Shown here one piece after another: positions 10,201-35,311 of a stretch of 39,082 nucleotides of DNA. A model generated the notes under the pieces. That model was not told the DNA's origin, made no database searches, and saw nothing but the letters and a program-made list of their open reading frames with translations. A program made the position numbers and the translations under genes. The stretch comes from Macrostomum lignano (Eukaryota), in NCBI GenBank assembly GCA_002269645.1, contig NIVC01004658.1, positions 1-39,082 on the forward strand, read 5' to 3'. How positions within the stretch are numbered: the stretch's first letter is position 1; each line of letters starts with the position of its first letter.

Positions 10201-10538
10201 TTCCACTCGCTTTTATCGTAGGCAAACAGGGTGCACTGCTGCTGTTGCTGCTCCCCGGAAGTGCCATTTCGTGGCGGCGTGAACCAGCACTGGCTGTCCT
10301 GACCGCCTGTGGCTGAAGCGTTAACGATCTGCGCCCAGGTGGGGGGACTCTCCAGCCAGTTCGGGTAGGCCTGCTGGCACACGAACGCCGGTCGGACCAC
10401 GTGGAATACCGTAATGACCATGTTGGCAGCGGCCTTCCACGACAGCGAGGCGAGGAGGTTGAACAGCACGATCTGGTAGCGGCCAAGGCTGCCGATGTGT
10501 TCCAGGACCTCTTCGTACTCCATGTGCACGGGAGCCAT
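7249..10538 (-). CDS. SLC22: SLC22 organic cation/anion transporter (MFS), 7 exons
   Basis: Exons 10538-10182, 10101-10002, 9781-9461, 9253-9131, 9044-8932, 8435-8221, 7580-7249, all GT-AG. Family motifs: YEEVLEHIGSLGRYQ, WDLVC, D-K/R-FGRRP, ESPRWL, EKVGRR, AEVYPTSIRNTG, LPETKG. Two apparent 1-nt deletions (about 10077 and 9251) must be corrected to keep the frame. Confidence 0.93.
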
Positions 10539-11533
10539 GGCTCCGACCCTGCTCGCGGCTGATGCGGAGCTCTGTAAAGCTAGACTCGCGAACTGGTTCG
10601 CCGAATTTCCAGTCTCAATGCCGCAAGGAGAAAGCGAGGCTGCAGGCAGAGGCTGGCTGACTCACAAATTAAACGGGCCTAGTGATACAGCAGGGTAGGA
10701 ACTGTGGGGTACGCAGGGAGGGAGGCGTCCCTACAGCCGCTCAGGTAAGGAGGCTCCGACAGAGGCAGTGGAGGAGGAAGTTCAGAGCAAGCGATGCTGC
10801 AGAGGTGAGAGCGTACTCTCGGGGCTGAGTATCATGAGAAGGTAAAAGCCACGCTCTTCTGCTTGGGTTAGGACTGTACTCAGCAGCTGCTCTGTATGCC
10901 TCCCTCACAACCGAGAATTAGCGCGAAGCGGTGGGTCAGAGGCGAGGGGTGGGAGTCCAGGCGGGGACAGAAAAATCGATCTGTTTTAGCCCCTCTTGTC
11001 TCCCTCTCAACCCCAGTTTCTGCCGGTCTCCACGCGTTTGCATGGCTTCTAAAGCCAAGGCAGGGTAGGCTGGACTCTGTGACTTTTGCAGAGAGCTCTG
11101 AAGATAACAGCTGTTATATTTAGAAGTCTCTGGACTTTTGAAGGCCACGGAGAAAGGGAGTGAAACTAAAGACCGGGTGCACCCACGAATCCATTGTAGC
11201 TTTTATTGTTCGCAGCAACCATGCCTCGGCTTGTGAAACTGATGCTTGGATGGATACGAAGTCAATTCGCCGCTAAAATTTCTGTGTATGCCTGATCTAG
11301 CAAATCTAGCTTCTCTTGTGTACATAATTCTGATGCTATGATATGCAACCATAACTATTAAGCAGTCATTCTAAAATCGAATTCAGGAAATAAAAACAGA
11401 CTTTTTGACACAATTGCAAGCATTTTGTCGACCAAACCACTGTTACATGCCCGTAAAGTTTTAACAAACTAAAAATAACGCCACAAAGTGTATTTTGAAA
11501 TTAGCCTTTATCTACGTACGTATCTGCAGTTTG

Positions 11534-14550: not shown

Positions 14551-16165
14551 ACAACAACAACAACAGAGTACGCTGCCAGTTCACAAAAGCAGCGTCAGAT
14601 GGCGCGCTTCAAAGCTTGGGTGCGAACAAAAGCCGCACCGCTGGCAGAGTCCGGAGCGCCGGCGTCAGCCAGCAGACAGTCGACGTAGCGCCGAGTCCTC
14701 GCCTGTCCCCGCCGGTAGGGTGCCTGCAACGTAAGTAGCAGCACCTCCTGCACCAGCTCCGGACAGTAGGCCTCGGCGCGGATGACGTGGCCTGCCAGCT
14801 GGAGTCGCCGACGGCGCAGCAGATCGCTAGGACGGGCCAGGCCGGCGCGATGATAGAGCGCCGTGTTGGTGACTCGCTCGTTGCCGATCTTGAAGGCGGC
14901 GCGCAGCAGGCCAGCGTGCGCCGCGTCGACTTGAGCCTCGAGCGAGTCTGTCAGCGTCCAGGTCTCGGCGTTGTATAACAGGACGGTCTCGATCACCGCC
15001 TGGAACAGCGCCGCCCTCTGGCGGTCCGGTAGGGCCTCGGACTGCAGGACTGACCTTATAGAACGAAAGGCAGCCCAAGCAAGTCCTCGGCGACGCCGCA
15101 GATCCTCGCGGACGTCGGGAACCAGACCGCCGAGGTAGACGAACTGCTGACATCTTGGAAGCTCACTCGCCTGTCCGTCAGCGCCTCGGCAGAAGATTGC
15201 AGCCTCGGTGTCGTCCGGCACGCATAGCACGACGGTCTTCTGCGTGTTGACCACCAGGCCGACGCTCGCCGCAACGGCAACCAGCCTATCCAGCTGTCGT
15301 TGGGCGCCCTCGACGGTCGAGGACAGCAGGGCGAGGTCATCGGCGTAGCCAAGCACGCTGAGCCGTCTCTCCGGTTGGCGTCGACCCACGCGTCGCCGCA
15401 GCAGGAAGCCGTCGTCGTTGGAAGGCAGAGCAGTCCGTAGCACCCAGTCAAGCACCAGAATAAATAGGAACGGCGCTAGCGTATCTCCCTGGAGCACCCC
15501 GGAGGATGTCTCGAAGAAATCCGATAGGCCGTCCGGTGTTGAGACAGCAGCCGTCGTGCCGTGGTACAGCGCCATGACAGCAGAAATCAGCAGCTCTGGC
15601 ACGTTGTACGCACGGAGCACCTCTGGGAGCGCGTCCCTCACGACCGAGTCGAAAGCCTTCCTGAAATCGACGAAGATCAGGATCAGGGTCAACTGGCGGA
15701 TGCGTGCCTCCTCGATGACTCGTCGAAGAGCCAGGATCTGCGTCACTGTGCCGCGATGGGGATTGGGGCCGGAATCCGTTCTGCTCAGGTCGCAGGTACG
15801 GGTCCAGCACAGGCTGTAACCGCGATAGCAGCATGCGGTTGAACAGCTTCGCGGCGCAGGACTGTAGGCAGATGCCTCGATGCTCCTCGAGCTTGGTGGT
15901 GCCCGGCTTCTTTGGAATGGCGACGATGTGCGCTGTGGTCCATTCGTTTGGCGCCACCTCACCGAAAAGCACGCGGTTCATCACTCTGGCGACCTCAGTG
16001 GCCATGCAGTGGATCCGCAGCGCCTCGGTGGGCACCTCGTCCGGACCAAGCGCTTTGCCGCCCGGCGACTGCCGAGCGAACTTCACAACGTCGGCTGTGC
16101 TGACTGGGGCAACATTGAAGCTCTCCTCCGCCGGCAACGGCGTCTCCGGCGGCAGCCTCAGATTT
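14551..16165 (-). mobile_element. 5'-truncated non-LTR retrotransposon (RTE-like LINE) with reverse transcriptase domain
   Basis: RT motifs: KALGPDEVP, IVAIPKKP, RGICL, PEQNGFRP, FVDFRKAFDSV, GVLQGDTLAPFLF, GYADDL, VNTQKT, YLG. ORF 15448-16137 joins ORF 14595-15760 across a 7-bp insertion. About 30-nt 3' UTR then a (GTT)n tail at 14551-14565. No endonuclease domain in view. GC-rich element in very AT-rich flanks. Confidence 0.93.
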
Positions 16166-16830
16166 TCTCAGATTTCTATGTAAAAGAACTAGAAGCAAGA
16201 TATTTTTTAATAAAAAAACGTTTAATAAATAGTTTTTAAAAATATTTTTATGTCTATGCTATGGTATTAAATGTTAACTTAGCATATTATACCTTTCAAC
16301 AATTTTTGCTTCACTATAAAGCATTTATTGTGCCTTTGAATTATCTCCTTTTTTCATATTCATTTTCTTCATTTTTAGGTATATACTTTGTGTTTCCAAT
16401 CTGGTAGAAATATATACATGATGTTGGGGGGCATGTGTAAAAAATAATGCACAAAAATAAGGGCAGCAAAATACTTGTAAAACAATCTGGTGGTTTACTT
16501 ATAACTAATAAGTCTAACAAATTACTATTTGCATTCTTTTTTAATTAAATAATTTTATATATTCAATACTAATAGACTACATTAGCTAGCATATAAATTT
16601 GTAGACATTGCTTTGGGCTTTTAATTATTCTATTAGCAAGCCATTAATCAATTTTCCTGAGTTTAAATAAAACATAGGTTAGCTATGGCCTATGGCCTAG
16701 TTGCATTTCTACTAACTATTTGCCACTTTAAAAGGTGGCCTGCATCTGCATGTTAAAAGACCATCTTTTTATGGACTGTGCATTGGCTTTTCTGGAATTC
16801 AGCCATCTAGTCTAGTCTTCTATTTTACAG

Positions 16831-19800
16831 CTGGAGCCTCCCAGTCCCACCGCAGCTTCCAAGGGCGTTGCTGCTGACTGGTGGCCAGCTGTCTCATCGG
16901 CCGCGGCCCGCCTTGAAGCTGCCATCAAGTCAGGCGACGCCGAGGAGGCAGCTCGCCAAGCGCGGCTGCTCTGCGAACGGCGCGTCCAGCTGGACATCCG
17001 GCCTGCGCCGCCTCCGCTGGCGATGCCGCAGCAGCAGGAAGAATCGCCAGTGGTCGCGCGGCGGTCGCTGCTGGATGACGGCTGGTTCGCCCTGCCGGTA
17101 GCCCTGGAGGGCCGCGGCCGGCCGCGCCAGCTGCTCCGCTTGATGGCGCGCGGCGACACTCGGATTGGCGAGCTGCGGGCCCGGGTGGCGGCTCGAGCTC
17201 GGGACCTACCGCCCGGACGGCAGTGCTGGATCGCAGGCGGGCTGCTGGCTTCTGACGACAGGTGATTTTTTCTCGCCTGCTGCTACCCTTCTAGGTCCTC
17301 AGTTGCTGGGCCAGCCTCCCAGATCCTCATTTGCAGGGCCAGCCTCCCAGATCCTCAGCTGCTGGGCCAGCCTCCCAGATCATCAGTTGCTGGGCCAGCC
17401 TCCCAGATCCTCAGCTGCTGAGCCAGCCTCCCAGATCCTCATTTGCAGGGCCAGCCTCCCAGATCCTCAGTTGCTGGGCCAGCCTCCCAGATCCTCAGTT
17501 GCTGGGCCAGCCCCCCAGATCCTCAGTTGCTGGGCCAGCCTCCCAGATCCTCAGTTGCTGGGCCAGCCTCCCAGATCCTCAGTTGCTGGGCCACGCTTCA
17601 TTTTTTGATTCCAACCACGCAAAACTCCGTCATCATCGTTGCTTCCCAGGTGCTTAAAAGATCTCGGGGCGGTCAGCGAGACTCAGCCGGTGCACCTGTA
17701 CGTGCTCGGCGATCCGCAGCCCGCAGCGGCGCCAGAAGCTCCACCAGCAGAAGAGGATGCTGAGCCAAGTCCAGCTGTGCCCGCGGCAACGGTGCCCGTT
17801 GCCATGGAGCCTGTGGTAAGTGGATGGAAAAGCAGTTGAGCGTATTAGTACTGGCTAGATATGCACAGTGTAAGGCCTGCATGCCTGACTAGGCAAGCAA
17901 TAAGAGATTCGCTTTACATTCTGTTCTTACTACTCTTCAGTAGGCGATCGACTACAATTGATTGATTCTGGTACCCACCACCCCCATGACAGGCCGAGCA
18001 GCCGCAGCGCACCTGGGACTGCCCGGTGTGCACCTTCAGGAACAGGTGGCGCCGACCCGGCTGCGAAATGTGCGCCACTGAGCGGCCCGAATCGGCGCCC
18101 TCGTCCGGGGCGTCTTCGGACGAAAAAGGCAGCGGCTTGCAGAGCAGAGAGTCGCCTGGACAGCGGCGCAGAGGCCACATTGGGGGGCTGTTCCGAGTGC
18201 TTCGGCCGGTGCCGGCTGCGAAACAGCGGCAGCAGCAGCGGCAGCAGCAGACGGGCAGCGGCGGCAGGAGAATCTGCTACAGTCGGGATTTCCTGCTGTC
18301 CCTGCAGAACTGCCCGCTGGCCGCCGGGAAGCCCGGGGACCTGCCGCGCGAGTTGCTGCGATCGCAGGTGCGAGTTGAAGTAAAAATATCAAACTATTGA
18401 TAATATTCGCAGGAGGACTGTAGGCTCAGTCAATCCTGTATTGGTGTGAGGAGTGCTGAGTCAGTGCTGTATTGATGTGAGGAGTGCTCAGTCAATCCTG
18501 TATTGATGTGAGGAGTGCTCAGTCAGTGCTGTATTGATGTGAGGAGTGCTCAGTCAATCCTGTATTGATGTGAGGAGTGCTCAGTCAGTGCTGTATTGAT
18601 GTGAGGAGTGCTCAGTCAATCCTGTATTGATGTGAGGAGTGCTCAGTCAGTGCTGTATTGATGTGAGGAGTGCTCAGTCAATCCTGTATTGATGTGAGGA
18701 GTGCTGAGTCAATCCTGTATTGATGTGAGGAGTGCTCAGTCAATCCTGTATTGATGTGAGGAGTGCTCAGTCAGTGCTGTATTGATGTGAGGAGTGCTCA
18801 GTCAATCCTGTATTGATGTGAGGAGTGCTCAGTCAGTGCTGTATTGATGTGAGGAGTGCTCAGTCAGTGCTGTATTGATGTGAGGAGTGCTCAGTCAATC
18901 CTGTATTGATGTGAGGAGTGCTGAGTCAATCCTGTATCGATGTGAGGAGTGCTCAGTCAATCCTGTATTGCTGTGAGGAGTGCTGAGTCAGTGCTGTATT
19001 GATGTGAGGAGTGCTCAGTCAATCCTGTATCGATGTGAGGAGTGCTCAGTCAATACCTACTTTCAAAAGTTGCCAATCAGCCTCCCTTTACTCCTTTGGC
19101 AGAAGCCTCCCAGGCTCCCAGTGGCGGGAGTCACCAGCCAGATGAATTATGCGCAGCCGCCTCTCCAGCTGCCATTTGCGGCCAGAAAGCGCCCGCCCCG
19201 CGGCCTGGTTGCATCACGGTCGGGCGCAAAGCAGACAGTCGGGCACAGGAGACCGGCGCAGCCTCCTCCGTGTTTGCAGCTCGTTCAGGACGGCAGCTCT
19301 TCGTCTGTGAGTGATAGTGGATTGCTAGTCTAGTCACAGTGGATTGCTAGTCTATTCACAGTGGATTGCTAGTCTAGTCACAGTGGATTGCTAGTCTAGT
19401 CACAGTGGATTGCTAGTCTATTCACAGTGGATTGCTAGTCTAGTCATAGTGGATTGCTAGTCTATTCACAGAGGAATGCTAGTCTATTCACAGTGGATTG
19501 CTAGTCTAGTCACAGTGGATTGCTAGTCTAGTCACAGTGGATTGCTAGTCTATTCACAGTGGATTGCTAGTCTAGTCATAGTGGATTGCTAGTCTATTCA
19601 CAGTGGATTGCTAGTCTAGTCATAGTGGATTGCTAGTCTATTCACAGAGGAATGCTAGTCTATTCACAGTGGATTGCTAGTCTAGTCACAGTGGATTGCT
19701 AGTCTAGTCACAGTGGATTGCTAGTCTATTCACAGTGGATTGCTAGTCTAGTCACAGTGGATTGCTAGTCTAATCACAGTGGATTGCTAGTCTAGTCACA

Positions 19801-20080
19801 GTGGATTGCTAGTCTATTCACAGTGGATTGCTAGTCTAGTCATAGTGGATTGCTAGTCTATTCACAGTGGATTGCTAGTCTATTCACAGTGGATTGCTAG
19901 TCTAGTCACAGTGGATTGCTAGTCTATTCACAGTGGATTGCTAGTCTAGTCACAGTGGATTGCTAGTCTAGTCACAGTGGATTGCTAGTCTAGTCACAGT
20001 GGATTGCTAGTCCATTCGAAGTCTCGGACTCAGAGTAATTTATCATATTTGTGTTGTCCCGCCTGAAATTGCAGGACTGA
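16831..20080 (+). CDS. SHARPIN: SHARPIN-like LUBAC subunit (LTM-UBL-NZF) with C-terminal extension; 5' exon(s) not found
   Basis: Exons 16831-17261, 17650-17815, 17993-18367, 19103-19306, then 20075-20080 (GAC TGA) or an alternative acceptor near 20260. LTM-like AARLEAAIKSGDAEEAARQARLLCERRVQLDI; UBL ending LPPGRQCWIAGGLLASDDR/CLKDLGAVSETQPVHLYVL; NZF WDCPVCTFRN...PGCEMCATERP (recalled human SHARPIN WSCPSCTFIN...PGCEMCSTQRP). No RBR in these exons. Confidence 0.78.
17290..17592. repeat. 28-bp minisatellite (GCTGGGCCAGCCTCCCAGATCCTCAGTT), about 11 copies, intron 17262-17649
   Basis: Tandem units seen directly. Confidence 0.95.
18263..18346 (+). other. eIF4E-binding (4E-BP-like) motif inside exon 3 of the SHARPIN-like gene
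   Basis: In-frame GRRICYSRDFLLSLQNCPLAAGKPGDLP contains canonical YxxxxL-phi and extends the match to the 4E-BP segment RIIYDRKFL....NSP.....P.DLP. Confidence 0.7.
18420..19052. repeat. 31-bp minisatellite (GAGGAGTGCTCAGTCAATCCTGTATTGATGT), about 20 copies, intron 18368-19102
   Basis: Tandem units seen directly. Confidence 0.96.
19312..20015. repeat. 22-bp minisatellite (CACAGTGGATTGCTAGTCTAGT), about 32 copies, intron 19307-20074
   Basis: Tandem units seen directly; begins about 5 nt after the GT donor. Confidence 0.96.
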
Positions 20081-20304
20081 TGGCACACGAGGAACAGCCG
20101 CTTGTCAACTGCGATTCGCAATTCCAGTTCTTATTCACTTTGATTTTTTTCAGCTCTGCGATTTGCCATTTTTAATGTTTGATTTGTAGTGTAAATAATT
20201 ACAATTTCTTATTTTTCTTATTTCCTAGTTTTTTATTATTATTTTCAAAAATTTTAGCAGATGGACGCTGCTCTGGTGCCGCTTTTGTACCAGTTAGACA
20301 GAAT

Positions 20305-20705
20305 GCCTCTGTAACACCTGTTAGACACATCTGCCAGAAACTCTGTAACACCTGTTAGACACATCTGCCAGAAACTCTGTAACACCTGTTAGACACATCT
20401 GCCAGAAACTCTGTAACACCTGTTAGACACATCTCCTAGAAACTCTGTAACACCTGTTAGACACATCTCCTAGAAACTCTGTAACACCTGTTAGACACAT
20501 CTCCCAGAAACTCTGTAACACCTGTTAGACATCTCCTAGAAACTCTGTAACACCTGTTAGACACATCTCCTAGAAACTCTGTAACACCTGTTAGACACAT
20601 CTCCCAGAAACTCTGTAACACCTGTTAGATATAACCCCTGTAACACCTGTTAGACATAACCCCTGTAACACCTGCTTGACAGAATAAGCTGTTACTGTAA
20701 CGCCT
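20305..20705. repeat. 34-bp minisatellite (CTCTGTAACACCTGTTAGACACATCTGCCAGAAA), about 10 copies plus degenerate tail
   Basis: Tandem units seen directly. Confidence 0.93.
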
Positions 20706-21039
20706 GTTCGCCTATAACAGCAGCCGTATGCACAGCCTCCCAATTATTGAATGCCAGGTAGAAAGGTGCGCTGGTGTTTTGATCTATTCATCCATAAATA
20801 ACATCCTTGAACATGATTTCGTGTCATCTGACAGTCCAAATCTCATCGCGTTTTTTATCGCCTTGCTCGTGCTATTTTAGCCAGATATTTTATTGAGGTT
20901 AAGGTAACCTACTTTTAACAATGTTGCATCGCACATCCAGTGTAGTCAATAAATTTTATATACATACTCTTTTATAACTAACAAAGCTAAAAACGGCATA
21001 CTTTTGTCTGTTCAGTTTGTTAGCACCATCAGCGAAGGA

Positions 21040-21680
21040 TCAGAAACCACCCTGAAAATCACTCAGAAACCACCCTGAGAATCACTCAGAAACCACCCTG
21101 AGAATCACTCAGAAACCACCCTGAGAATCACTCAGAAACCACTCTGAGAATCACTCAGAAACCACCCTGAGAATCACTCAGAAACCACCCTGAGAATCAC
21201 TCAGAAACCACCCTGAGAATCACTCAGAAACCACTCTGAGAATCACTCAGAAACCACCCTGAGAATCACTCAGAAACCACCCTGAGAATCACTCAGAAAC
21301 CACCCCGAGAACCGCCCAGAAACCCTGAAAACCACCAAGAAACCCTGAGAACCACCAAGAAACCCTGAGAACCGCCCAGAAACCCTGAGAACCACCAAGA
21401 AACCCTGAGAACCACCAAGAAACCCTGAGAACCGCCCAGAAACCCTGAGAACCACCAAGAAACCCTGAGAACCGCCCAGAAACCCTGAGAACCACCAAGA
21501 AACCCTGAGAACCACCAAGAAACCCTGAGAACCACCAAGAAACCCTGAGAACCGCCAAGAAACGCTGAGAACCGCCAAGAAACCCCGAGAACCGCCTTGA
21601 GAACCCCCCTGAGAACCGCCAAAAAAACCCTGAGAACCGCCCAGAAACCCCAAGAACCGCCCAGAAATCCTGAGAACTGC
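21040..21680. repeat. Composite minisatellite: 23-bp (GAGAATCACTCAGAAACCACCCT) switching to related 20-bp (GAGAACCACCAAGAAACCCT) unit
   Basis: Tandem units seen directly; ends about 70 nt before the HOIL-1 ATG. Confidence 0.94.
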
Positions 21681-21750
21681 TCCAAAACGAGAAGCAGGTC
21701 AGAATGCAGCAGGAAAACCGCATTTATTGCATGCTGATCTCCGCCTCGCC

Positions 21751-24700
21751 ATGTCGACGGTGCCCGCCGGTGTCCGGCGCCTCTCCGAGAACTTCAACGC
21801 CGCTCTGTCGGAGCGCAACGTAGACAAGGCGCAGCGCCTGGCAGCGGAGCTCGCCAACTCCCGGCTGTTCAGCCTGCGCGCCTACGCTGAACCCGAGGGC
21901 GCCGCGACCTCCTCCGGTGGCGCCCTGCCTGAGGAGAGCCTGCTGGTGTCGCTGACGCTGCAGGCTGGTGGCTCTCGCTCCTGCGGCCCGCTGCGCCTCG
22001 TCATGCCGCGGACCGCCTGCATCGCCGACCTGAAGGACGAGACGCTGTTGGTTTTCGGCCTGCCGCCCGCGATTCAGCGGTGCATGGCTGATGGCCAGCT
22101 GCTGGGCAATGAGAGGATTTTTGATGAGCTCACCAAGACTAAGGAGCTCAAGGTTGGGGACTGCGGAACTGCTAAAGCTGACTGATCCCATGATGATGCT
22201 GGCTGTGTGATCCCATGATGATGCTGGCTGTGTGATCCCATGATGATGCTGGCTGTGTGATCCCATGATGATGCTGGCTGTGTGATCCCATGATGATGCT
22301 GGCTGTGTGATCCCATGATGATGCTGGCTGTGTGATCCCATGATGATGCTGATGTGTGATCTCATGATGATGCTGGTGTGTGTGATCCCATGATGATGCT
22401 GATGTGTATGATCCCATGATGATGCTGTTGTGTTTGATCTCATGATGATGCTCAGTGTGTGATCCCATGATGCTCAGTATGCGATCCCATGATGATGCTG
22501 AGTGTTTGTCCTCAAAGTGGACCTGGAGCATGCCAAATCTGTTTATTCCCCAATCTCTCAGGTGCTGACCTACCTGGTTACATCGAATCCTGAGCACTGG
22601 CCACCAAAGAAGGATCATCTTGAGCAGCTGAAGGCGGCTGTACGGGCCGAGCGGGACCGGCAGGTCATCCGCCGGGAGGATTCCGAATACGATGAAGGCT
22701 CTGCAGGATCTGTAGGGCCGTCGCAGCCGCAGCAGCCTGAGGTTGAAGAAGAAGTGAGTGACTCAAATAGCTCACTTCATTAAATCTCAGAATTCACATC
22801 CTTTGATGTGTGCCGCCATCTCGATTTGCATCCTTTGATGTGTGCCGCCATCTCGATTTGCATCCTTTGATGTGTGCCGCTATCTCGATTTGCATCCTTT
22901 GATGTGTGCCGCCATCTCGATTTGCATCCTTTGATGTGTGCCGCTATCTCGATTTGCATCCTTTGATGTGTGCCGCCATCTCGATTTGCATCCTTTGATG
23001 TGTGCCGCTATCTCGATTTGCATCCTTTGATGTGTGCTGCCATTTCGATTTGTATCCTTTGATGTGTGCCGCCATCTCGATTTGCATCCTTTGATGTGTG
23101 CCGCCATCTCGATTTGCATCCTTTGATGTGTGCCGCTATCTCGATTTGCATCCTTTGATGTGTGCCGCCATCTCGATTTGCATCCTTTGATGTGTGCCGC
23201 TATCTCGATTTGCATCCTTTGATGTGTGCCGCCATCTCGATTTGCATCCTTTGATGTGTGCCGCTATCTCGATTTGCATCCTTTGATGTGTGCCGCCATC
23301 TCGATTTGCATCCTTTGATGTGTGCCGCCATCTCGATTTGCATCCTTTGATGTGTGCCGCCATCTCGATTTGCATCCTTTGATTTGTGCCGCCATCTCGA
23401 TTTGCATCCTTTGATGCATGTCACCATTCAGGATTCTTTGATGTGGACCGCCACTTAAGATCCTTTGATCTGTGCCGCCATTTTAGAAGAATCATTTGTT
23501 GTGTGCCGCCATTTTAGAATCCTTTAATGTGTGCACCATTTCAGAATCATTTGATGTGTGCCGCCATTTCAGAATCCTTTAATGTGTGCCATCATCTCAG
23601 AATTCGCATCCTTTAATGTGTCACGTTACCGTCGCCTTCTCCGCCCTCTCCGCCCCCGCAGCCAGGCTGGAGCTGTCCCAAGTGCACCTTCCGCAACGAG
23701 CCGGTGCGGCCCGGCTGCCAGATGTGCGGTGGGGCGCGGCCGCCCGACTACGAGGTGCCGGCGGAGCTGCAGGCAGAAGAGGAGCAGCGGCAGCTGAAGC
23801 TGCACGGCGAATTTCTTAAATTCGTGAGTTGCGAGTCCCTGCTTTGTCTTAATGTTCTATGGGCTGATTTCTTGCTGCATGTGAACAATTGTAGGCCGGG
23901 GCAAGGGTAGAATAGCTGGGGCAGGGGTAGAATAGCTGTGGCAGGGGTAGAATAGCTGTGGCAGGGGTAGATTAGCTGGGGCAGGGGTAGAATAGCTGGG
24001 GCAGGGGTAGAATAGCTGTGGCAGGGGTAGATTAGCTGTGGCAGGGGTAGATTAGCTGTGGCTGGGTAGAATAGCTGTGGCAGCGGTAGATTAGCTGGGG
24101 CAGGGGTAGATTAGCTGTGGCAGGGGTAGATTAGCTGTGGCTGGGGTAGATTAGCTGTGGCTGGGGTAGATTAGCTGTGGCAGGGGTAGAATAGCTGTGG
24201 CAGCGGTAGATTAGCTGGGGCAGGGGTAGATTAGCTGTGGCAGGGGTAGATTAGCTGTGGCTGGGGTAGATTAGCTGTGGCAGGGGTAGAATAGCTGTGG
24301 CTGGGGTAGATTAGCTGTGGCTGGGGTAGATTAGCTGTGGCTGGGGTAGATTAGCTGTGGCAGGGGTAGAATAGCTGTGGCAGCGGTAGATTAGCTGGGG
24401 CAGGGGTAGATTAGCTGTGGCAGGGGTAGATTAGCTGTGGCAGGGGTAGATTAGCTGTGGCAGGGGTAGAATAGCTGTGGCAGCGGTAGATTAGCTGGGG
24501 CAGGGGTAGATTAGCTGGGGCAGGGGTAGATTAGCTGTGGCAGGGGTAGATTAGCTGTGGCAGGGGTAGATTAGCTGTGGCAGGGGTAGATTAGCTGTGG
24601 CAGGGGTAGATTAGCTGTGGCAGGGGTAGAATAGCTGGGGCAGGGTTAGATTACCTGGGGCAGGGGTAGTGACCCAAGCAGCCAATCAGAAGCCTGAAAA

Positions 24701-27700
24701 GCTAGATTGCCAGCCAATCAGCGATCGAGCTCCGCGACTAAGCTGAGAGCCGAGCGGCAGAACTGCACTGTTTTGTACATGCGCTTTTAAAAAGTGGAAA
24801 TGTTTTGTTAAGCAAGGCAAATGCGGGGCCAAGTCAGACCAGCGCAACCGATCCCACAGAGAGCTACATTGAGACACCGGGCTCTGAGGAACCCGATGAC
24901 CGCCGCCGCCGCGGATTCCAGCAGCAGCGACTCGGATGATGAAGAGAACAAGGCGGATGAACCTAGCGAAGCTGCTGATCCATAGTGTTCCACTACCTCA
25001 TTGGAATCTTATTGAACTTCTTTTACATTTGGCATTGTGATAGCACTGTGACAATATGCCCTAAGATGCGTTCCGATTCCCTGTCACCGGTGTACTGATA
25101 TCTGAGATCACCTGTTCACCCGTATCTTAATATCTGAGATCACCTGTTCACCGGTATCTTAATATCTGAGATCACCTGTTCACCGGTATCTTAATATCTG
25201 AGATCACCTGTCACTGGTGTCCTAATATCTGAGCTCACCTGTTCACAGGTGTCCTGATATCTGAGATCACCTGTTCACCGGTATCCTAATATCTGAGATC
25301 ACCTGTTCACCGGTATCCTAATATCTGAGATCACCTGTTCACAGGTGTCCTGATATCTGCGATCACGTGTTCACAGGTGTCCTGATATCTGCGATCACGT
25401 GTTCACAGGTGTCCTGATATCTGAGATCACCTGTCACCGGTGTCCTGATAGCGCTAAGATTCCCTGTTTCTGGAAATCAGCTTCTGTAAATCGTGTACAC
25501 TATTTCTCGAATCTTTTATTTACTATTATCTCTTATCATTTTCTTTGCTTGCCATGCGGTTATCCAGTGTTTTTATTTCTTTCCAAAGTGGATATTGTCC
25601 CCACTTGGCCAATAGCTGCCTAATTTCCTAGCAAAAATTTTAGACACGTTTGATAATCCGTGAAATATAAAACAGATTTTTTGGTCAAAGAGATTTTTCT
25701 CTCAAGAAATACCTAATACGAAACCTCTGCTATTCTTCACAGGCATTAATTTATTGTTTGACAATGAACGGCTGACTGCACGGATCCAGGCAGGCTGGCT
25801 GACTTCTCAAATTTGCCTTTATCGGTTGGACTGATGATGTGAATTTCCAATATTGCACCGTTACCAGGAATCTTGCTGATTGACCTCTCGGAATACGCTC
25901 GGAGCGACTTTCCAGAGACACAGTGACGGAGTGACTTTCCAGGGACACAGTGACGGAGCGACTTTCCAGAGACACAGTGACGAAGTGACTTTCCAGAGAC
26001 ACAGTGACAAGAGTGACTTTCCAGAAACACAGTGAGGGAGTGACTTTCCAGGGACACAGTGACAAGAGTGAATTTCCAGGGACACAGTGACGGAGTGACT
26101 TTCCAGGGACACAGTGACGGAGTGACTTTCCAGAGACACAGTGACGAAGTGACTTTCCAGGAACACAGTGACAAGAGTGAATTTCCAGGGACACAGTGAC
26201 CGCTATTTAAATGCCGAAAGTGTGCCTGAAGGGCAGGAAAGACTGGAAGCCCGCTGGCTTAGTTTACATTAATGCGGCACTGGGGTTGGGCCTAAAGTAC
26301 ACCTGCAGGCAGTCGCACGGTGGGAAGCCGGAATCCTCATCAATCAGAATTGCCCCCCCCCCCTGTTGCGCAATCTGCAGACCGAGCGGGAGCGCGAGCG
26401 CAACTTCCGCGAGCTCATGAACCTGACGCAGGGCTCGCTGATCCCCGTGCCGGCGCAGCAGGGCTTCGAGTGCCCGATCTGCCTCTGCGACGTTGGCGGC
26501 GACGATGACGACGGCGACGGCATCCGGGGCCTGCGGCTGCGCGAGTGCGGCCACGAGGTCTGCGAGAACTGCCTGAGGGACCACGCGCTCAACTCCGACC
26601 GGCTGCCCGTCATCTGCCCGTGCGAGCCGTGCCAGCAGACTGTCACCGAGGCCGAGCTCAAGGAGCTGCTCACCGATGAGCAGCTGGCCAGGCTGCAGCG
26701 GCTGGGGCTCCGCCAGGCCGAGGCCGTCATCACCAACGCCTTCCACTGCGTGACGCCAAACTGCGAGGCATTCGTTGAACTGGTGGACAATGTTAACGAG
26801 TTTGAGTGCGAGGTGTGCCAGGAGCACAACTGCGTCACCTGCAGGGCCTCCCACAAGGACCTCACCTGCCAGCAATACCAGGACGACCTGCGCAGGCGCG
26901 CTGAGAACGACGAGAATGCCAAGCTGGGACTGCAGAAACTGGAGGTGAGTGATTGAGTGACACCTTGGCTGATTGAGTGACACCTTGGCTGATTGAGTGA
27001 CACCTTGGCTGATTGAGTGACACTATTGGCTGATTGAGTGACACTATTGGCTGATTGAGTGACACCCTTGGCTGATTGAGTGACACCTTGGCTGATTGAG
27101 TGACACCCTTGGCTGATTGAGTGACACCCTTGGCTGATTGAGTGACACCCTTGGCTGATTGAGTGACAGCCTTGGCTGATTGAGTGACACCCTTGGCTGA
27201 TTGAGTGACACTGACTGATTGAGTGACACCTTGGCTGATTGAGTGACACCTTGGCTGATTGAGTGACACTATTGGCTGATTGAGTGACAGCCTTGGCTGA
27301 TTGAGTGACACCTTGGCTGATTGAGTGACAGCCTTGGCTGATTGAGTGACACCCTTGGCTGATTGAGTGACACTGACTGATTGAGTGACACCTTGGCTGA
27401 TTGAGTGACACCTTGGCTGATTGAGTGACACTATTGGCTGATTGAGTGACAGCCTTGGCTGATTGAGTGACACCTTGGCTGATTGAGTGACAGCCTTGGC
27501 TGATTGAGTGACACCCTTGGCTGATTGAGTGACACTGACTGATTGAGTGACACCTTGGCTGATTGAGTGACACCTTGGCTGATTGAGTGACACTATTGGC
27601 TGATTGGGTGACAGCCTTGCCTGATTGAGTGACACCTTGGCTGATTGAGTGACACCCATGACTGATTGAGTGACACTGACTGATTGAGTGACACCATGTG

Positions 27701-27989
27701 TAAAGTTTATAGGATAGCAGACTAACTGCAACTGGTTTCCCACTGTCACTCCCGAATCGTGCAGGACATGCTGCAGTCCGGAGAGGCCAAGAAGTGCCCC
27801 AAATGCCAGGTGTTTCTCTCCAAGCGCGAAGGCTGCGACTGGCTGATGTGCTCCGTGTGCCGCACCGAGATCTGCTGGGCCACCCGCGGCCCGCGCTGGG
27901 GACCCGGCGGCCAGGGTGACACCTCTGGCGGCTGCCGCTGCCGGGTGAACAACAAGAAGTGCCACCCGAACTGCATGAACTGCCATTAG
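21751..27989 (+). CDS. RBCK1: HOIL-1L / RBCK1 RBR E3 ubiquitin ligase, 514 aa, 5 exons
   Basis: Exons 21751-22152, 22562-22753, 23662-23823, 26381-26944, 27765-27989, all phase 0 with GT-AG. LTM plus UBL; [24 protein letters not shown]...PPDYEVP; RING1 CPIC...[12 protein letters not shown]; [11 protein letters not shown]...VNEFECEVC; RING2 CPKC...[53 protein letters not shown]-stop, the diagnostic HOIL-1L C-terminus. Confidence 0.96.
22183..22502. repeat. 25-bp minisatellite (TGTGATCCCATGATGATGCTGGCTG), about 13 copies, intron 22153-22561
   Basis: Tandem units seen directly. Confidence 0.95.
22795..23620. repeat. 32-bp minisatellite (CATCCTTTGATGTGTGCCGCCATCTCGATTTG), about 20 near-perfect copies plus degenerate 3' copies, intron 22754-23661
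   Basis: Tandem units seen directly. Confidence 0.96.
23895..24670. repeat. 20-bp G-rich minisatellite (GGCAGGGGTAGATTAGCTGT), about 38 copies
   Basis: Tandem units seen directly, in HOIL-1 intron 23824-26380. Confidence 0.96.
25095..25445. repeat. 32-bp minisatellite (ATATCTGAGATCACCTGTTCACCGGTATCTTA), about 11 copies
   Basis: Tandem units seen directly. Confidence 0.93.
25903..26200. repeat. 27-bp minisatellite (GACTTTCCAGGGACACAGTGACGGAGT), about 11 copies
   Basis: Tandem units seen directly. Confidence 0.93.
26951..27695. repeat. 20-21-bp minisatellite (GATTGAGTGACACCTTGGCT), about 36 copies, intron 26945-27764
   Basis: Tandem units seen directly; starts immediately after GTGAGT donor. 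Confidence 0.96.
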
Positions 27990-30900
27990 ACATAGGGAGC
28001 TGCCATTAGACACTGGGAGCTGCCGTTAGGCACTGGGGAGCTGCCATTAGACACTGGGAGCTGCCATTAGACACTGGGAGCTGCCATTAGACACTGGGAG
28101 CTGCCATTAGACACTGGGAAGCTGCCATTAGACACTGGGAAGCTGTCATTAGACACTGGGGAGCTGCCATTAGACACTGGGGAGCTGGTATTAGACACTG
28201 GGGAGCTGCCATTAGACACTGGGGAGCTGCCATTAGACACTGGGGAGCTGTCATTAGACACTGGGGAGCTGCCATTAGACACAGGGGAGCTGCCATTAGG
28301 CACTGGGAGCTGCCATTAGACACTGGGGAGCTGCCATTAGACACTGGGGAGCTGCCATTAGGCACTGGGAGCTGCCATTAGACACTGGGGAGCTGATATT
28401 AGACACTGGGGAGCTGCCATTAGACACTGGGGATCTGCCATTAGGCACTGGGAGCTGCCATTAGACACTGGGAGCTGCCATTAGACACTGGGAGCTGGTA
28501 TTAGACACTGGGAGCTGCCATTAGACACTGGGAGCTGGTATTAGACACTGGGGAGCTGCCATTAGACACTGGGGAGCTGCCATTAGACACTGGGAGCTGG
28601 TATTAGACACTGGGAGCTGCCATTAGACACTGGGGAGCTGCCATTAGGCACTGGGAAGCTGCCATTAGGCACTGGGGAGCTGCCATTAGACACTGGGGAG
28701 CTGCCATTAGGCACTGGGAGCTGCCATTAGACACTGGGAGCTGCCATTAGACACTGGGAGCTGCCATTAGACACTGGGAGCTGGTATTAGACACTGGGAG
28801 CTGGTATTAGACACTGGGAGCTGCCATTAGACACAGGGAAGCTGTCATTAGACACTTGGAAGCTGCCATTAGGCACTGGGGAGCTGCCATTAGACACAGG
28901 GAGCTGCCATTAGACACTGAGAGCTGTCATTAGACACTGGGGAGCTGCCATTAGACACTGGGGAGCTGCCATTAGACACAGGGAGCTGCCATTAGACACT
29001 GGGAGCTGCCATTAGACACTGGGAGCTGCCATTAGACACTGGGAGCTGGTATTAGACACTGGGGAGCTGCCATTAGACACTGGGGAGCTGCCATTAGACA
29101 CTGGGAGCTGCCATTAGACACTGGGAGCTGCCATTAGACACTGGGAGCTGCCATTAGACACTGGGAGCTGGTATTAGACACTGGGAGCTGGTATTAGACA
29201 CTGGGAGCTGGTATTAGACACTGGGAGCTGCCATTAGACACTGGAAGCTGCCATTAGACACTGGGGAGCTGCCATTAGACACTGGGGCTGCCATTAGACA
29301 CTGGGAGCTGCCATTAGACACTGGGAGCTGCCATTAGACACTGGGAGCTGCCATTAGACACTGGGAGCTGGTATTAGACACTGGGAGCTGGTATTAGACA
29401 CTGGGAGCTGCCATTAGACACAGGGAAGCTGTCATTAGACACTTGGAAGCTGCCATTAGGCACTGGGGAGCTGCCATTAGACACAGGGAGCTGCCATTAG
29501 ACACTGAGAGCTGTCATTAGACACTGGGGAGCTGCCATTAGACACTGGGAGCTGCCATTAGACACAGGGAGCTGCCATTAGACACTGGAAGCTGCCATTA
29601 GACACAGGGAGCTGCCATTAGACACTGAGAGCTGTCATTAGACACTGGGGAGCTGCCATTAGACACTGGGGAGCTGCCATTAGACACAGGGAGCTGCCAT
29701 TAGACACAGGGAGCTGCCATTAGACACAGGGAGCTGCCATTAGACATAGGGAGCTGCCATTAGACACTGGGGAGCTGCCATTAGACACAGGGAGCTGCCA
29801 TTAGACACTGGGAGCTGCCATTAGACACAGGGAGCTGCCATTAGACACTGGAGCTGCCATTAGACACTTGGAAGCTGCCATTAGGCACTGGGGAGCTGCC
29901 ATTAGACACAGGGAGCTGCCATTAGACACTGAGAGCTGTCATTAGACACTGGGGAGCTGCCATTAGACACAGGGAGCTGCCATTAGACACAGGGAGCTGC
30001 CATTAGACACTGGGAGCTGCCATTAGACACTGGGAGCTGCCATTAGACACTGGGAGCTGGTATTAGACACTGGGGAGCTGCCATTAGACACTGGGGAGCT
30101 GCCATTAGACACTGGGGAGCTGCCATTAGACACTGGGAGCTGCCATTAGACACTGGGAGCTGCCATTAGACACTGGGAGCTGCCATTAGACACTGGGAGC
30201 TGGTATTAGACACTGGGAGCTGGTATTAGACACTGGGAGCTGGTATTAGACACTGGGAGCTGCCATTAGACACTGGGAGCTGGTATTAGACACTGGGGAG
30301 CTGCCATTAGACACTGGGGAGCTGCCATTAGACACTGGGAGCTGCCATTAGACACTGGGAGCTGCCATTAGACACTGGGAGCTGCCATTAGACACTGGGA
30401 GCTGGTATTAGACACTGGGAGCTGGTATTAGACACTGGGAGCTGCCATTAGACACAGGGAAGCTGTCATTAGACACTTGGAAGCTGCCATTAGGCACTGG
30501 GGAGCTGCCATTAGACACAGGGAGCTGCCATTAGACACTGAGAGCTGTCATTAGACACTGGGGAGCTGCCATTAGACACTGGGAGCTGCCATTAGACACA
30601 GGGAGCTGCCATTAGACACTGGAAGCTGCCATTAGACACAGGGAGCTGCCATTAGACACTGAGAGCTGTCATTAGACACTGGGGAGCTGCCATTAGACAC
30701 TGGGGAGCTGCCATTAGACACAGGGAGCTGCCATTAGACACAGGGAGCTGCCATTAGACACAGGGAGCTGCCATTAGACATAGGGAGCTGCCATTAGACA
30801 CAGGGAGCTGCCATTAGACACAGGGAGCTGCCATTAGACACTGGGAGCTGCCATTAGACACTGGGAGCTGCCATTAGACACTGGGAGCTGCCATTAGACA

Positions 30901-31168
30901 CTGGGGAGCTGCCATTAGACACTGGGGAGCTGCCATTAGACACAGGGAGCTGCCATTAGACACTGGGAGCTGCCATTAGACACTGGGAGCTGCCATTAGA
31001 CACTGGGAGCTGCCATTAGACACTGGGGAGCTGCCATTAGACACTGGGGAGCTGCCATTAGACATAGGGAGCTGCCATTAGGCACTGGGGAGCTGCCGTT
31101 AGGCACTGGGGAGCTGCCATTAGACACTGGGAGCTGCCATTAGACACTGGGGAGCTGGTATTAGACAG
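27980..31168. repeat. About 3.2-kb 20-21-bp minisatellite (CTGCCATTAGACACTGGGAG) with higher-order blocks, starting at the HOIL-1 stop codon
   Basis: About 155 tandem units seen directly. Confidence 0.97.
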
Positions 31169-32823: not shown

Positions 32824-34764
32824 TTAAGACGACTTCGAGTGCCGGGATCTGTGACTGCCTCGGCTGCTGCTCCGCGATCTGCTGCCGCGGCTGCCACGGC
32901 TGTGGCTTCGCTGCTTGTGGCCGTGGCCCCCCTTCTTCTTGTCCCCATCGCCGCCACCGGAGCCTTTGTCGTGGACTTTCTGCTTTTTAGTCTCAATCAT
33001 CTTCGTGATGTCCGTCATCAGAGTGCTCAGAAACTCTGCGGATCGGAGAAGTTTGGTTTGAGTTGCGGCCGGGAAGGAAATTCGGAGCTCAGCTTGTTTG
33101 GTTAGCTGTTAAATCTTTCAGATGTAAGATTGATAACTGGTGCGAAGTACATGTAACTGACAGCTGTTGTCTGCTCATGGCAACTTAGTGCAGGTTTGGA
33201 TGGGTAAAGGGGTAACCCTGATCCTGCACCCAACCCTGCACCCAAACCTGCGCCAAAACCTACACCCAACCCTACACCCAACCCTGCACCCAACCCTACA
33301 CCCAACCCTGCACCCAACCCTGCACCCAGCCCTCACCGGAGTAGTCGATCTTGCCATCCCCGTTGGCATCCGCCTCTCGCATGAGCTTGTCGAACTCCTT
33401 CTCGGTGAGGGCGGAATTCCCCGAGCCGAAGATCGCATCGTGCAGTTCGTCTCGCTCGATGTAGCCGCTGTTGTCTTTATCCAGCTTCTGGAAGCTCGCC
33501 ATCAAATCGTCGCGGACAGCCTGAGGCGGCTTGCACACCTGACCCATCAACTGGGAAAATTCCACAAAGTTCATGGAACCGCTGGCGTCCTTGTCGTACA
33601 ATTTAAGCAGTTTTTCGACCTCCTCTTTCGACTTTGGAGCCTGGCCCATCACCTGTGATTGGGGATACCGACCTAGTCAATGCAATCCAATGTCTGTGAA
33701 GATTCATAATTTTCCCTTTTATCCCATAAGGGGTTGAGTGACAGACTAAGTTGTGATTTTTTTAACGATTCTAAACTCATTAAGCTGGTCATTAGAGCTG
33801 GCAGCTCTGTTTGGGGCAGGGCGTGAGGTGGGTGTCTGCTGAGCGAGGGGTTAGGGGAGGGCGTGAGGTGGGTGTCTACTGAGGGGGTTGGGGCAGGGGG
33901 TGAGGTGGAAGTCTGCTGAGGGAGGCGTTGAGACAGGGGGTGAGGTGGAAGTCTGCTGAGGGAGGCGTTGGGGCACGGGGTGAGGGGAAGTCTGCTGAGG
34001 GAGGCGTTGGGGGAGGGCGTGAGGTGGATGTTTGCTGAGAGAGGCGTTGGGGCAGGGGGTGAGGGGAAGTCTGCTGAGGGAGGCGTTGGGGGAGGGCGTG
34101 AGGTGGAAGTTGCTGAGAGAGGCGTTGGGCAGGGGGTGAGGTGGAAGTTTGCTGAGAGAGGCGTTGGGGCAGGGGGTGAGGTGGAAGTCTGCTGAGGGAG
34201 GCGTTGGGGCAGGGGGTGAGGTGGAAGTCTGCTGAGGGAGGCGTTGGGGCAGGGGTGAGGTGGAAGTCTGCTGAGAGAGGCGTTGGGGCAGGGGGTGAGG
34301 TGGAAGTCTGCTGAGGGAGGCGTTGGGGCAGGGGTGAGGTGGAAGTCTGCTGAGAGAGGCGTTGGGGCAGGGCGTCCCTGAAGAGATCAAGTTTTAGTCT
34401 ATGGGTGAGACAAGTTCTCAGAGAGTTCGCCGAGTATTGGTCAGCAACGCTTGACAATATGAGGAGCCATCAGATTCCTGATCAGGCTCTGCACAGCGGA
34501 GTGTTGAACTTGGGCAGCGATAGTCTATGGCCAGCCCTGCCAAACCCGCCGGCAGGAACGGATTTTACGAGTATTACGGCGAGAAGAGCAGATTAATTGA
34601 ACATACCTGCAGGCAGGCAAATAACTCTCCAGCATCCATGGTGTCTGAGTTGTCCTTGTCGAACATCTTGAACACAAGTAGTGCTTGCTGGCCTCCTCAA
34701 CTGACACGCCGGCCTCTTGCAGAGCAGCGTAGTACTGCTCAGGAACCGCGGACACCGCTGCCAT
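32824..34764 (-). CDS. Calmodulin-like 4-EF-hand protein with basic Arg/Ser-rich C-terminal tail (about 228 aa)
   Basis: Exons 34764-34607, 33652-33337, 33035-32824. EF loops DKDNSDTMDAGE, DKDASGSMNFVE, DKDNSGYIERDE, DANGDGKIDYSE. Exon 1 is 158 nt, one base short of 53 codons (apparent deletion near 34684). Confidence 0.88.
33222..33330. repeat. 12-bp repeat (CCAACCCTGCAC), about 9 copies, starting at the donor of calmodulin-like intron 2
   Basis: Seen directly; reads GGGTTGGGTGCA on the transcribed strand. Confidence 0.9.
33810..34375. repeat. About 40-bp G-rich minisatellite (GGGCAGGGGGTGAGGTGGAAGTCTGCTGAGGGAGGCGTTG), about 14 copies, calmodulin-like intron 1
   Basis: Tandem units seen directly. 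Confidence 0.94.
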
Positions 34765-35311
34765 CTCTGGTTGATAACTCTAAACAATTTCAGTAGGAAG
34801 ACACAAAGCAGCAACAGACAGGGCTGTCTGAGGTGGCAGCTTAAGCTTTATACGCTCACCTGCCCTCCACACTTCGCTGTGCCCGTCTCTCACCCTGCGC
34901 CTCCTATTATTCGAGTCTTGTGTAGCCAATTATCCAATGTACGAGCCTGCGTTGCACACACTGCGGCTAGGGGGCAGCTGCTCCGCGACCATGGAGACCG
35001 GCGGCTCGGGCTTGTGTTTCTAAGCCTAGCCAGCTCTTGTATCTCGCCTTCAACTCTCGCCCGCAGATACAGAAAAAACGAAATTAGCAGTTTGTTATAA
35101 CTGAGCCGCACTTTTGCAGGCTTGCGAAGCATCTAAAAATAGATCTGCTTCTTTGAGCGCTGCAATGCAAGTCCTTCTGTTTGATACTGAACTGGGGCCC
35201 GGCTTATCTGCCTTATTTAGTTAGCTAAAGCTCTTAAAGTAACCTTATGCGATCAAGTTTGCTGAGTTGCTTTTGCTTTAGCAGAATTTCCAGAGTTGCT
35301 TGAAGCTAAAA

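Follow-up and report, generated by a model that had tools for sequence, protein, structure and literature searches.

The HOIL-1L gene of the flatworm Macrostomum lignano and its neighbour, a probable RBR-less SHARPIN analogue with a 4E-BP-type tail

The biology of LUBAC, a complex that assembles linear ubiquitin chains, has been worked out almost entirely in mammals and on the Drosophila protein LUBEL, and the origin of its two accessory subunits, HOIL-1L (RBCK1) and SHARPIN, is unsettled. Vertebrate SHARPIN, a non-catalytic subunit, is built as PH-LTM-UBL-NZF; HOIL-1L joins an LTM-UBL-NZF module to a RING1-IBR-RING2 (RBR) ligase unit, and in human the SHARPIN gene lies on chromosome 8 and the RBCK1 gene on chromosome 20. 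Aplysia possesses HOIP and HOIL1 and lacks a SHARPIN gene; an RBR-less HOIL1 isoform (XP_035825204.1), made by alternative splicing from the one gene, has been proposed as a SHARPIN analogue (PMC9334734). Here we analyse a 39,082-bp window, which is the complete contig NIVC01004658.1 of the free-living flatworm Macrostomum lignano (assembly GCA_002269645.1), and in particular two of its genes, A and B, that are currently annotated only as hypothetical proteins. The original prediction made on this DNA had read them as a SHARPIN-like gene followed in tandem by a HOIL-1L gene, together forming a LUBAC accessory-subunit cluster. A search of the literature for the gene identifiers Mlig004010, Mlig014046 and Mlig021711 gave no matches, and a search for LUBAC or HOIP in connection with flatworms gave nothing relevant. 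We consider it likely that gene B is the HOIL-1L orthologue and that gene A is an old, independently derived SHARPIN analogue that lacks the RBR and carries a 4E-BP-type core in its tail.

Sequence and predicted structure alike show that gene A encodes a genuine RBR-less LTM-UBL-NZF protein, its domain matches standing well above the level of chance, and here the original prediction is borne out by Pfam, by a family profile, by PDB sequence comparison and by AlphaFold2 with Foldseek. The Pfam LTM model scores 28.7 bits on the fragment and 27.3 bits on the full protein (cut-off 27.5). A profile covering the LTM and UBL, assembled from members of the family with a fish RBCK1 as its seed, matches residues 26-166 of gene A at 8e-27 and a third M. 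lignano paralogue, C, at 3e-17. Among PDB sequences, gene A retrieves the HOIL-1L NZF at 2.5e-7, which is the best match to its own NZF, the SHARPIN LTM-UBL (5y3t_C) at 9.6e-4 and the HOIL-1L LTM-UBL at 0.021. The contacts between paired LTMs have been described by Fujita et al. as L176, I180 and A192 of mSHARPIN and L15, A18, V19 and A31 of mHOIL-1L (PMC6044281); in our alignment gene A holds L, A, I and A at these positions and gene B holds F, A, L and A, the contact positions thus being kept in both genes. The NZF of gene A, WDCPVCTFRNRWRRPGCEMC, retains all four cysteines, the T-F ubiquitin-binding dipeptide and the Met that precedes the final two Cys; the zinc ligands and the TF motif are likewise present in gene B, and all 28 sequences of the alignment agree at position 207, C209, C212, T213, N216, C223 and C226. 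An AlphaFold2 model of gene A, built on the 28-sequence family alignment, has pLDDT values of 93-94 for the two LTM helices (residues 17-49), 84-97 for the UBL (85-165) and 86-96 for the NZF (205-230), and the protein outside these three domains is predicted to be disordered. The best Foldseek matches to the model are 5y3t_A (HOIL-1L LTM-UBL, 1.3e-9), 4dbg_A (TM 0.86, root-mean-square deviation 1.5 Å), 5y3t_C and 5x0w (SHARPIN; TM 0.81-0.85), with ubiquitin itself ranking below the HOIL-1L and SHARPIN LTM-UBL structures.

Gene B shows the complete architecture LTM-UBL-NZF-RBR, with a HOIL-1L-type helical tail after the NZF. In PDB sequence comparison its RBR matches that of human HOIL-1 (8eaz) at E 4.5e-70, and the IBR-RING2 structures 7yuj and 8bvl match at about 1e-57 (4.5e-70 to 3e-57 with 8eaz included). 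The catalytic residues of HOIL-1 are C460, E471, N508 and H510, and its Zn2-Cys6 cluster is formed by C473, C493, C495, C502, C506 and C509 (PMC10575588); aligned to the three structures, gene B is identical at C460, E471, N508, the C-terminal H510 and all six cluster cysteines, in agreement with the original prediction of a HOIL-1L that keeps its GCDW Cys and terminal NCH His. The Pfam LTM model finds no match in gene B; the family LTM and UBL profile covers its LTM at 2e-22, and its NZF has the HOIL-1L NZF as best PDB match. On these alignments gene B is clearly orthologous to HOIL-1L/RBCK1, its catalytic apparatus is intact, and it should be an active ester-forming RBR ligase. As a separate observation, intron 3 of gene B holds an open frame with a stop behind a good acceptor (cccacag), in phase with exon 3, and this frame is included in older-assembly models of the gene. 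Used as a putative terminal exon, it would yield an RBR-less isoform with an acidic, Ser-rich end, and this resembles the RBR-less forms of Aplysia and Bradybaena.

Gene A has the domain order of SHARPIN and, like it, no RBR. It might therefore be a true SHARPIN orthologue, the A-B pair then representing an ancestral, pre-bilaterian tandem duplication that yielded SHARPIN and HOIL-1L; a retained ancestral tandem duplication is one of the two origins that the original prediction had offered. The SHARPIN LTM-UBL does come slightly ahead of the HOIL-1L LTM-UBL in the PDB sequence search given above, and the LTM of gene A is nearer to the family consensus than that of gene B. Nevertheless, the evidence on descent makes orthology highly improbable. 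The Pfam model Sharpin_PH (PF16764) has no match in gene A, whereas a fish RBCK1 (P0012) scores 191 bits in the same scan, and tblastn searches of the whole 39-kb window with the Sharpin_PH domains of fish, bat and frog give nothing below E 0.5 and no upstream PH exon. We further computed a neighbour-joining tree of 34 sequences from 129 LTM-UBL columns with 300 bootstraps, a distance method on a short alignment, in which mammal-type SHARPINs form a 99% clade adjoining vertebrate PH-containing proteins, RBCK1 among them; gene A falls with the SHARPIN clade in 0 of 300 replicates and with vertebrates in 0 of 300. Its LTM-UBL is best matched outside Macrostomum by arthropod RBCK1 proteins, HOIL-1L stands first in the structure ranking, and Aplysia does without a SHARPIN gene (PMC9334734). 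Moreover, SHARPINs group with vertebrate PH-containing RBCK1 such as the fish protein, which unites PH, LTM, UBL, NZF and RBR in one chain; this suggests a PH-bearing RBCK1 as the source of SHARPIN and the vertebrates as the group in which it arose.

Because gene A has no PH domain, never joins SHARPIN or the vertebrates in the bootstraps, and Aplysia has no SHARPIN gene, an independent, lineage-specific origin is the better fit, and gene A is better described as a SHARPIN analogue than as an orthologue. The second of the two origins considered in the original prediction is thus favoured over a retained ancestral duplication, against which the PH domain, the tree and Aplysia all speak. The phylogeny that had been proposed as a check does not place A within the SHARPIN clade. 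The accompanying claim, that the LTMs are very diverged and the duplication old, agrees with our figures: the LTM-UBL modules of A and B are 23% identical over 129 aligned columns, and it is this divergence that argues for an old duplication. Pairwise identity is 31% over 124 aa between A and B and 28% over 232 aa between A and C. Intron positions were compared as possible evidence that A derives from B: the UBL intron of A lies 12 columns off that of B, and the introns preceding the two NZFs are close together but do not coincide in residue.

Searched exhaustively with HMMER, 1.84 billion representative proteins yielded 128 significant matches to gene A. Those named and matching over the LTM-UBL include RBCK1 or RBCK1-like proteins from arthropods, molluscs, a nemertean, Nematostella, a sponge and hagfish, mammalian SHARPINs, and a PH-bearing, RBR-less Xenopus protein that is probably SHARPIN; the RBR-less isoform of Aplysia (P0090) is also among the matches. 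The fish protein P0012, of 709 aa, carries Sharpin_PH (191 bits), LTM, UBL, NZF and RBR, and an N-terminal Sharpin_PH likewise stands before LTM-UBL-NZF-RBR in other vertebrate RBCK1 (P0094, P0082). This suggests that the PH domain predates the split of SHARPIN and RBCK1 and was lost from mammalian HOIL-1L. RBR-less LTM-UBL-NZF proteins are seen outside jawed vertebrates in Sycon ciliatum (P0093, 457 aa) and in hagfish (P0107, isoforms of 231-243 aa), and RBR-less members of the family may have arisen several times. Paralogue C (P0010, 516 aa, full length) is encoded on the 141-kb contig NIVC01000837.1 (L003 10001-19087), has all RBR features and is 42% identical to B, with which it has three intron positions in common; C is without an intron in the UBL. 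A six-frame motif scan of the 29 kb around C (10 kb on each side), limited to NZF-like and YxxxxL-phi patterns, found no second NZF, no 4E-BP motif and no A-like gene.

Its tail, which is of 4E-BP type, makes gene A more than a mimic of SHARPIN. This segment had been overlooked in the original prediction, as had the missing start codon before the LTM of gene A and the missing PH domain. The NZF exon, a single exon of 375 nt, runs without a stop and in the same frame into TGSGGRRICYSRDFLLSLQNCPLAAGKPGDLP, which aligns with residues 45-77 of human 4E-BP1 at E 0.003 in a PDB sequence search. The eIF4E-binding core within it, RRICYSRDFLLSLQNCPLAAGKPGDLP, comprises YSRDFLL with its flanks and is of the canonical YxxxxL-phi type. 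Pfam eIF_4EBP (PF05456) scores 23.6 bits on exon 3 and 21.9 bits on the full protein, against a gathering cut-off of 24. In the HMMER search the tail retrieved two proteins, at 3.4e-4 and 3.6e-4, both of which are clear 4E-BPs (72 and 116 bits on PF05456), and outside M. lignano the tail region is matched only by these two free-standing 4E-BPs. A tblastn search of the window with the 4E-BP P0112 found 18260-18346 at E 5.8e-6, the next-best match having an E of 2.5, with no other significant match. None of the other 128 significant matches joins a 4E-BP module to LTM-UBL-NZF; this combination is absent from every significant match other than gene A. A short helix is predicted on SRDFLLS, the tail being otherwise disordered, and LPVAGVTS in exon 4, set beside 4E-BP1 and P0112, resembles the non-canonical IPGVTS motif of 4E-BPs. 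As an observation on the 4E-BPs themselves, the small proteins P0112 and P0109 (from JGI and Logan assemblies) each contain two tandem YDRDFL eIF4E-binding cores, the second of which is the closest match to the tail of gene A.

In human 4E-BP1, regulation by mTORC1 involves the Thr/Ser-Pro sites T37, T46, S65 and T70 and the RAIP and TOS motifs. Gene A has G, C and G in place of T46, S65 and T70, with T46-P47 replaced by G-S, and neither a RAIP nor a TOS (F-x-phi-D-phi) motif is present in gene A, whose C-terminus reads ..DGSSSSD. Lacking the phosphorylation sites and the TOS motif, the tail is predicted to be insensitive to mTORC1; it looks like a putative eIF4E-binding module that mTORC1 could not switch off. 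Operons are many in M. lignano, and the spliced leader donates an ATG, so that a downstream cistron needs none of its own (PMC8629364; PMC12582326). The annotated gene A might thus be two merged units, a SHARPIN-like gene ending near the NZF and a separately trans-spliced 4E-BP gene, and several CAG triplets do stand closely 5' of RRICYSRDFLL. Such a merger is nonetheless distinctly improbable: NZF and core share one 375-nt exon and one frame with no stop between them, the transcript-based NCBI models on both contigs that carry the locus (see below) cover both parts (393 and 392 aa), and the linker GLFRVLRPVPAAKQ is kept also in more diverged copies of the older assembly.

The two genes stand head-to-tail on the plus strand (Table 1). 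The translation of the five GT-AG exons of gene A is 100% identical over its full length to the NCBI protein BOX15_Mlig004010g1 (393 aa, 'hypothetical, partial'), and the five GT-AG, phase-0 exons of gene B give a model of 516 aa that matches the protein recorded for the contig. The distance between the two coding sequences is 1,664 bp, in line with the spacing of about 1.7 kb originally described for a same-strand tandem, and the motifs that had been quoted from the two genes are found on the plus strand where they had been placed: RLEAAIKSGDAEEAARQARLL at 16909-16971, the segment quoted from the LTM of gene B at 21790-21852, and GCDW and NCH in its last exon. A mis-join had been named as a finding that would undo the prediction; it is excluded. 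A second contig, NIVC01003120.1, has the same order of A (392 aa), B (511 aa), an EF-hand gene (minus strand) and NAAA, and several UniProt models from the older assembly (P0004, P0005 and P0006) run from the end of A into B. Because the second contig repeats the order and these models bridge the two genes, the adjacency of A and B is real.

The frame of gene A is closed upstream of 16831, and its first internal ATG, at 17023, lies past the LTM. Directly before the first annotated base stands TTACAG, in accord with [T/C]TNCAG, the motif of trans-splice acceptors in M. lignano; the spliced leader of this species ends in ATG (PMC8629364), and flatworm spliced-leader AUGs can initiate translation, according to PMC12582326, citing Cheng et al. 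2006. This terminal ATG would be in frame with gene A. The acceptor is probably a spliced-leader trans-splice site, and the start codon of gene A is probably supplied by the leader, a complete protein of M+393 aa without a PH domain being the most economical reading. The window contains ATTTATTGCATG 18 nt upstream of the ATG of gene B and out of frame with it. These letters are the 12 nt with which the M. lignano spliced leader ends; they occur nowhere else in the window and are kept on the second contig (L002 9963-9974). The full 35-nt leader has no match in the window at <=3 mismatches, and only its 12-nt 3' end is found. This element may be left over from a retro-copied 5' end, may cause spliced-leader reads to be mapped falsely, or may have arisen by chance. 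Operons of M. lignano are recognised as same-strand neighbours with a repeat-adjusted spacer of <1 kb and a trans-spliced downstream gene (Ustyantsev and Berezikov 2021; PMC8629364); with 1,013 bp of minisatellite deducted from its 1,664 bp, the A-B spacer comes to 651 bp. Because the repeat-adjusted spacer is short, co-transcription of A and B appears possible.

In the reading that we favour, gene A probably arose by an ancient local duplication followed by loss of the RBR. Its mRNA would be trans-spliced between 16830 and 16831, the terminal AUG of the spliced leader starting the protein as M-LEPPS.... The LTM of gene A would pair with that of B or C to form a tethering domain, the UBLs would dock on a UBA of the HOIP/LUBEL type, if one is present in the species, the NZF would bind ubiquitin, and the disordered tail would bind eIF4E free of mTOR control. 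The term 'LUBAC accessory cluster' is best taken as a proposal about function. That gene A is a bifunctional adaptor, in which a constitutive, mTOR-insensitive 4E-BP is joined to a ubiquitin-binding module that tethers HOIL-1L or HOIP, we put forward tentatively, as a possible but doubtful extension. Several points weigh against these interpretations. All three Pfam scores of full-length gene A are slightly below the curated cut-offs, and the AlphaFold2 resemblance is partly built in because the underlying alignment consists of family members, and is thus supporting rather than independent. A and B, which are two long branches, group in 42% of the replicates, and the parent of gene A may have been B-type, C-type or older. 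Between the canonical and the IPGVT-like motif, gene A has 13 residues more than 4E-BP1, and the annotated 5' end of gene B is not preceded by an AG acceptor. A query with the human HOIP RING2-LDD, checked against 4ljo, retrieved only 69 vertebrate fragments and is uninformative for M. lignano. Finally, the two available DNA copies of gene A are nearly identical and so yield no signal of purifying selection.

Gene A might also be a functionless or decaying chimera of a truncated HOIL-1L copy and a 4E-BP fragment, with no role towards HOIL-1L, HOIP or eIF4E; the near-identity of the two DNA copies leaves room for this. Such decay would suit the loss of the 4E-BP mTOR sites and the TOS motif, and the lack of an orthologue outside Macrostomum among the 1.84 billion representative proteins. 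It would also suit a genome that is described in PMC10468722 as a repeat-rich hidden polyploid with many duplicates. We regard it as unlikely, since the five-exon frame is intact on two contigs; the LTM contacts, the NZF zinc ligands and TF motif, and YxxxxLL are kept despite a divergence of about 75% from B and C; and the older-assembly copies, which differ elsewhere, retain the same motifs. The transcript-based annotation, moreover, implies that gene A is expressed. An old, independent SHARPIN analogue beside the HOIL-1L gene is thus the reading that we carry forward.

Table 1. Coordinates of genes A and B and of other features in the 39,082-bp window
Feature	Position	Strand	Content
Acceptor of gene A	16825-16830	+	TTACAG, directly before the first annotated base of gene A; product flagged partial
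Gene A	16831-20080	+	393 aa
Gene A exon 1	16831-17261	+	LTM (16903-17004) and first part of UBL; frame open from base 1
Gene A exon 2	17650-17815	+	Last UBL strand (..PVHLYVLG, UBL end 17710), then Pro/Ala-rich linker
Gene A exon 3	17993-18367	+	NZF (18014-18073, WDCPVCTFRNRWRRPGCEMC), linker, 4E-BP-type core RRICYSRDFLLSLQNCPLAAGKPGDLP (18266-18346); uninterrupted frame
Gene A exon 4	19103-19306	+	Disordered tail with LPVAGVTS (19115-19138)
Gene A exon 5	20075-20080	+	GAC TGA, final Asp and stop
A-B spacer	20081-21744	+	1,664 bp, including minisatellite blocks 20307-20681 and 21040-21677 (1,013 bp)
Spliced-leader-like 12-mer	21722-21733	+	ATTTATTGCATG
Gene B	21745-27989	+	516 aa
Gene B exon 1	21745-22152	+	ATG 21751, diverged LTM (21778-21885), most of UBL
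Gene B exon 2	22562-22753	+	Last UBL strand (end 22585), then acidic linker
Gene B exon 3	23662-23823	+	NZF (23668-23727), HOIL-1L-type helical NZF tail (23728-23823)
Open frame in gene B intron 3	24859-24985	+	Putative terminal exon
Gene B exon 4	26381-26944	+	RING1 (26471-26632), IBR (26744-26869)
Gene B exon 5	27765-27989	+	RING2, catalytic Cys in GCDW (27831-27842), Zn2-Cys6 extension, NCH (27978-27986), stop
Minisatellites (examples)	17296-17593, 18424-19054, 19316-20012, 22183-22500, 22797-23590, 23900-24669, 26950-27695, 27980-31167		
Acyl-CoA-synthetase-like exon	1360-1692	-	
MFS/sugar-transporter-like gene	7252-10661	-	
Reverse transcriptase open frames	14595-16137	-	Non-LTR/LINE type by motifs
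EF-hand gene	33299-33676	-	Syntenic on second contig
NAAA/acid-ceramidase-like gene	35282-37100	+	Syntenic on second contig

The exons are GC-rich, and nearly every intron or spacer bears a minisatellite of its own, with a 20-35-bp unit and copies that match at 88-96%. The largest of these (157 copies of a 20-mer, 3.2 kb) lies directly 3' of the stop of gene B. The reverse transcriptase open frames, which by their motifs are of the non-long-terminal-repeat, long interspersed nuclear element type, lie some 700 bp upstream of the acceptor of gene A, and thus in its presumed outron or promoter region. The remaining neighbours are ordinary-looking: an exon resembling acyl-CoA synthetase and a gene resembling sugar transporters of the major facilitator superfamily on one side, and the EF-hand and NAAA/acid-ceramidase-like genes on the other.

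The locus and the family survey suggest that true SHARPIN branched off from a PH-bearing RBCK1 in vertebrates, and that an RBR-less LTM-UBL-NZF partner was gained otherwise elsewhere, by alternative splicing in Aplysia and as a separate neighbouring gene in Macrostomum. Co-folding of the LTMs of A and B would mean that the tethering-domain mechanism is older than SHARPIN and also outlasts it. Were gene A indeed a bifunctional adaptor, cap-dependent translation in M. lignano would be directly coupled to HOIL-1L or linear-ubiquitin signalling, with the ligase recruited to eIF4E-bound messenger ribonucleoproteins, or with the sequestration of eIF4E made ubiquitin-dependent. On that reading gene A would also stand for a third way, independently evolved, of obtaining a SHARPIN-like subunit. 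A connection with translation is plausible because human HOIL-1 was recently reported to have a LUBAC-independent role at PABPC1 and the ribosome (PMC13179138), which is a lead rather than a test. Through the 4E-BP-type tail, a connection of HOIL-1-type ubiquitin signalling with the initiation of translation becomes concretely testable, and a test is feasible because RNA interference and transgenesis are available in M. lignano.

Set against the known systems, gene B corresponds throughout to HOIL-1L/RBCK1, being a full LTM-UBL-NZF-RBR protein with the HOIL-1-specific Zn2-Cys6 extension and the C-terminal His. Gene A shares with vertebrate SHARPIN the order LTM-UBL-NZF without an RBR, the LTM contact positions and a predicted fold that fits the SHARPIN and HOIL-1L LTM-UBL crystals; unlike SHARPIN, it has no PH domain, falls outside the SHARPIN clade, has a long disordered tail with a 4E-BP-type motif and adjoins the HOIL-1L gene. 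The RBR-less HOIL1 form of Aplysia has the domain content of gene A, but it is a splice isoform there (PMC9334734), whereas in M. lignano this content is found in a separate, highly diverged gene. With the 4E-BPs (PF05456), gene A has in common the core, including the residues corresponding to Y54, L59 and M60 of YxxxxL-phi, the DLP motif, PVAGVTS further on, and a tail for which disorder is predicted, apart from a short helix at the motif. It differs from them in that the core sits in the tail of a 393-aa multidomain protein rather than in a free protein of about 120 aa, in the G, C and G at T46, S65 and T70, in having neither RAIP nor TOS, in a 13-residue insertion before the IPGVT-like motif, and in a Pfam score slightly below the cut-off (21.9-23.6 versus 24). 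Finally, A and B resemble the spliced-leader operons of M. lignano as same-strand neighbours with an adjusted spacer of about 650 bp, the first of which begins at a motif-conforming acceptor; the typical spacer in those operons is about 100 bp, and the annotated 5' end of gene B is without the AG.

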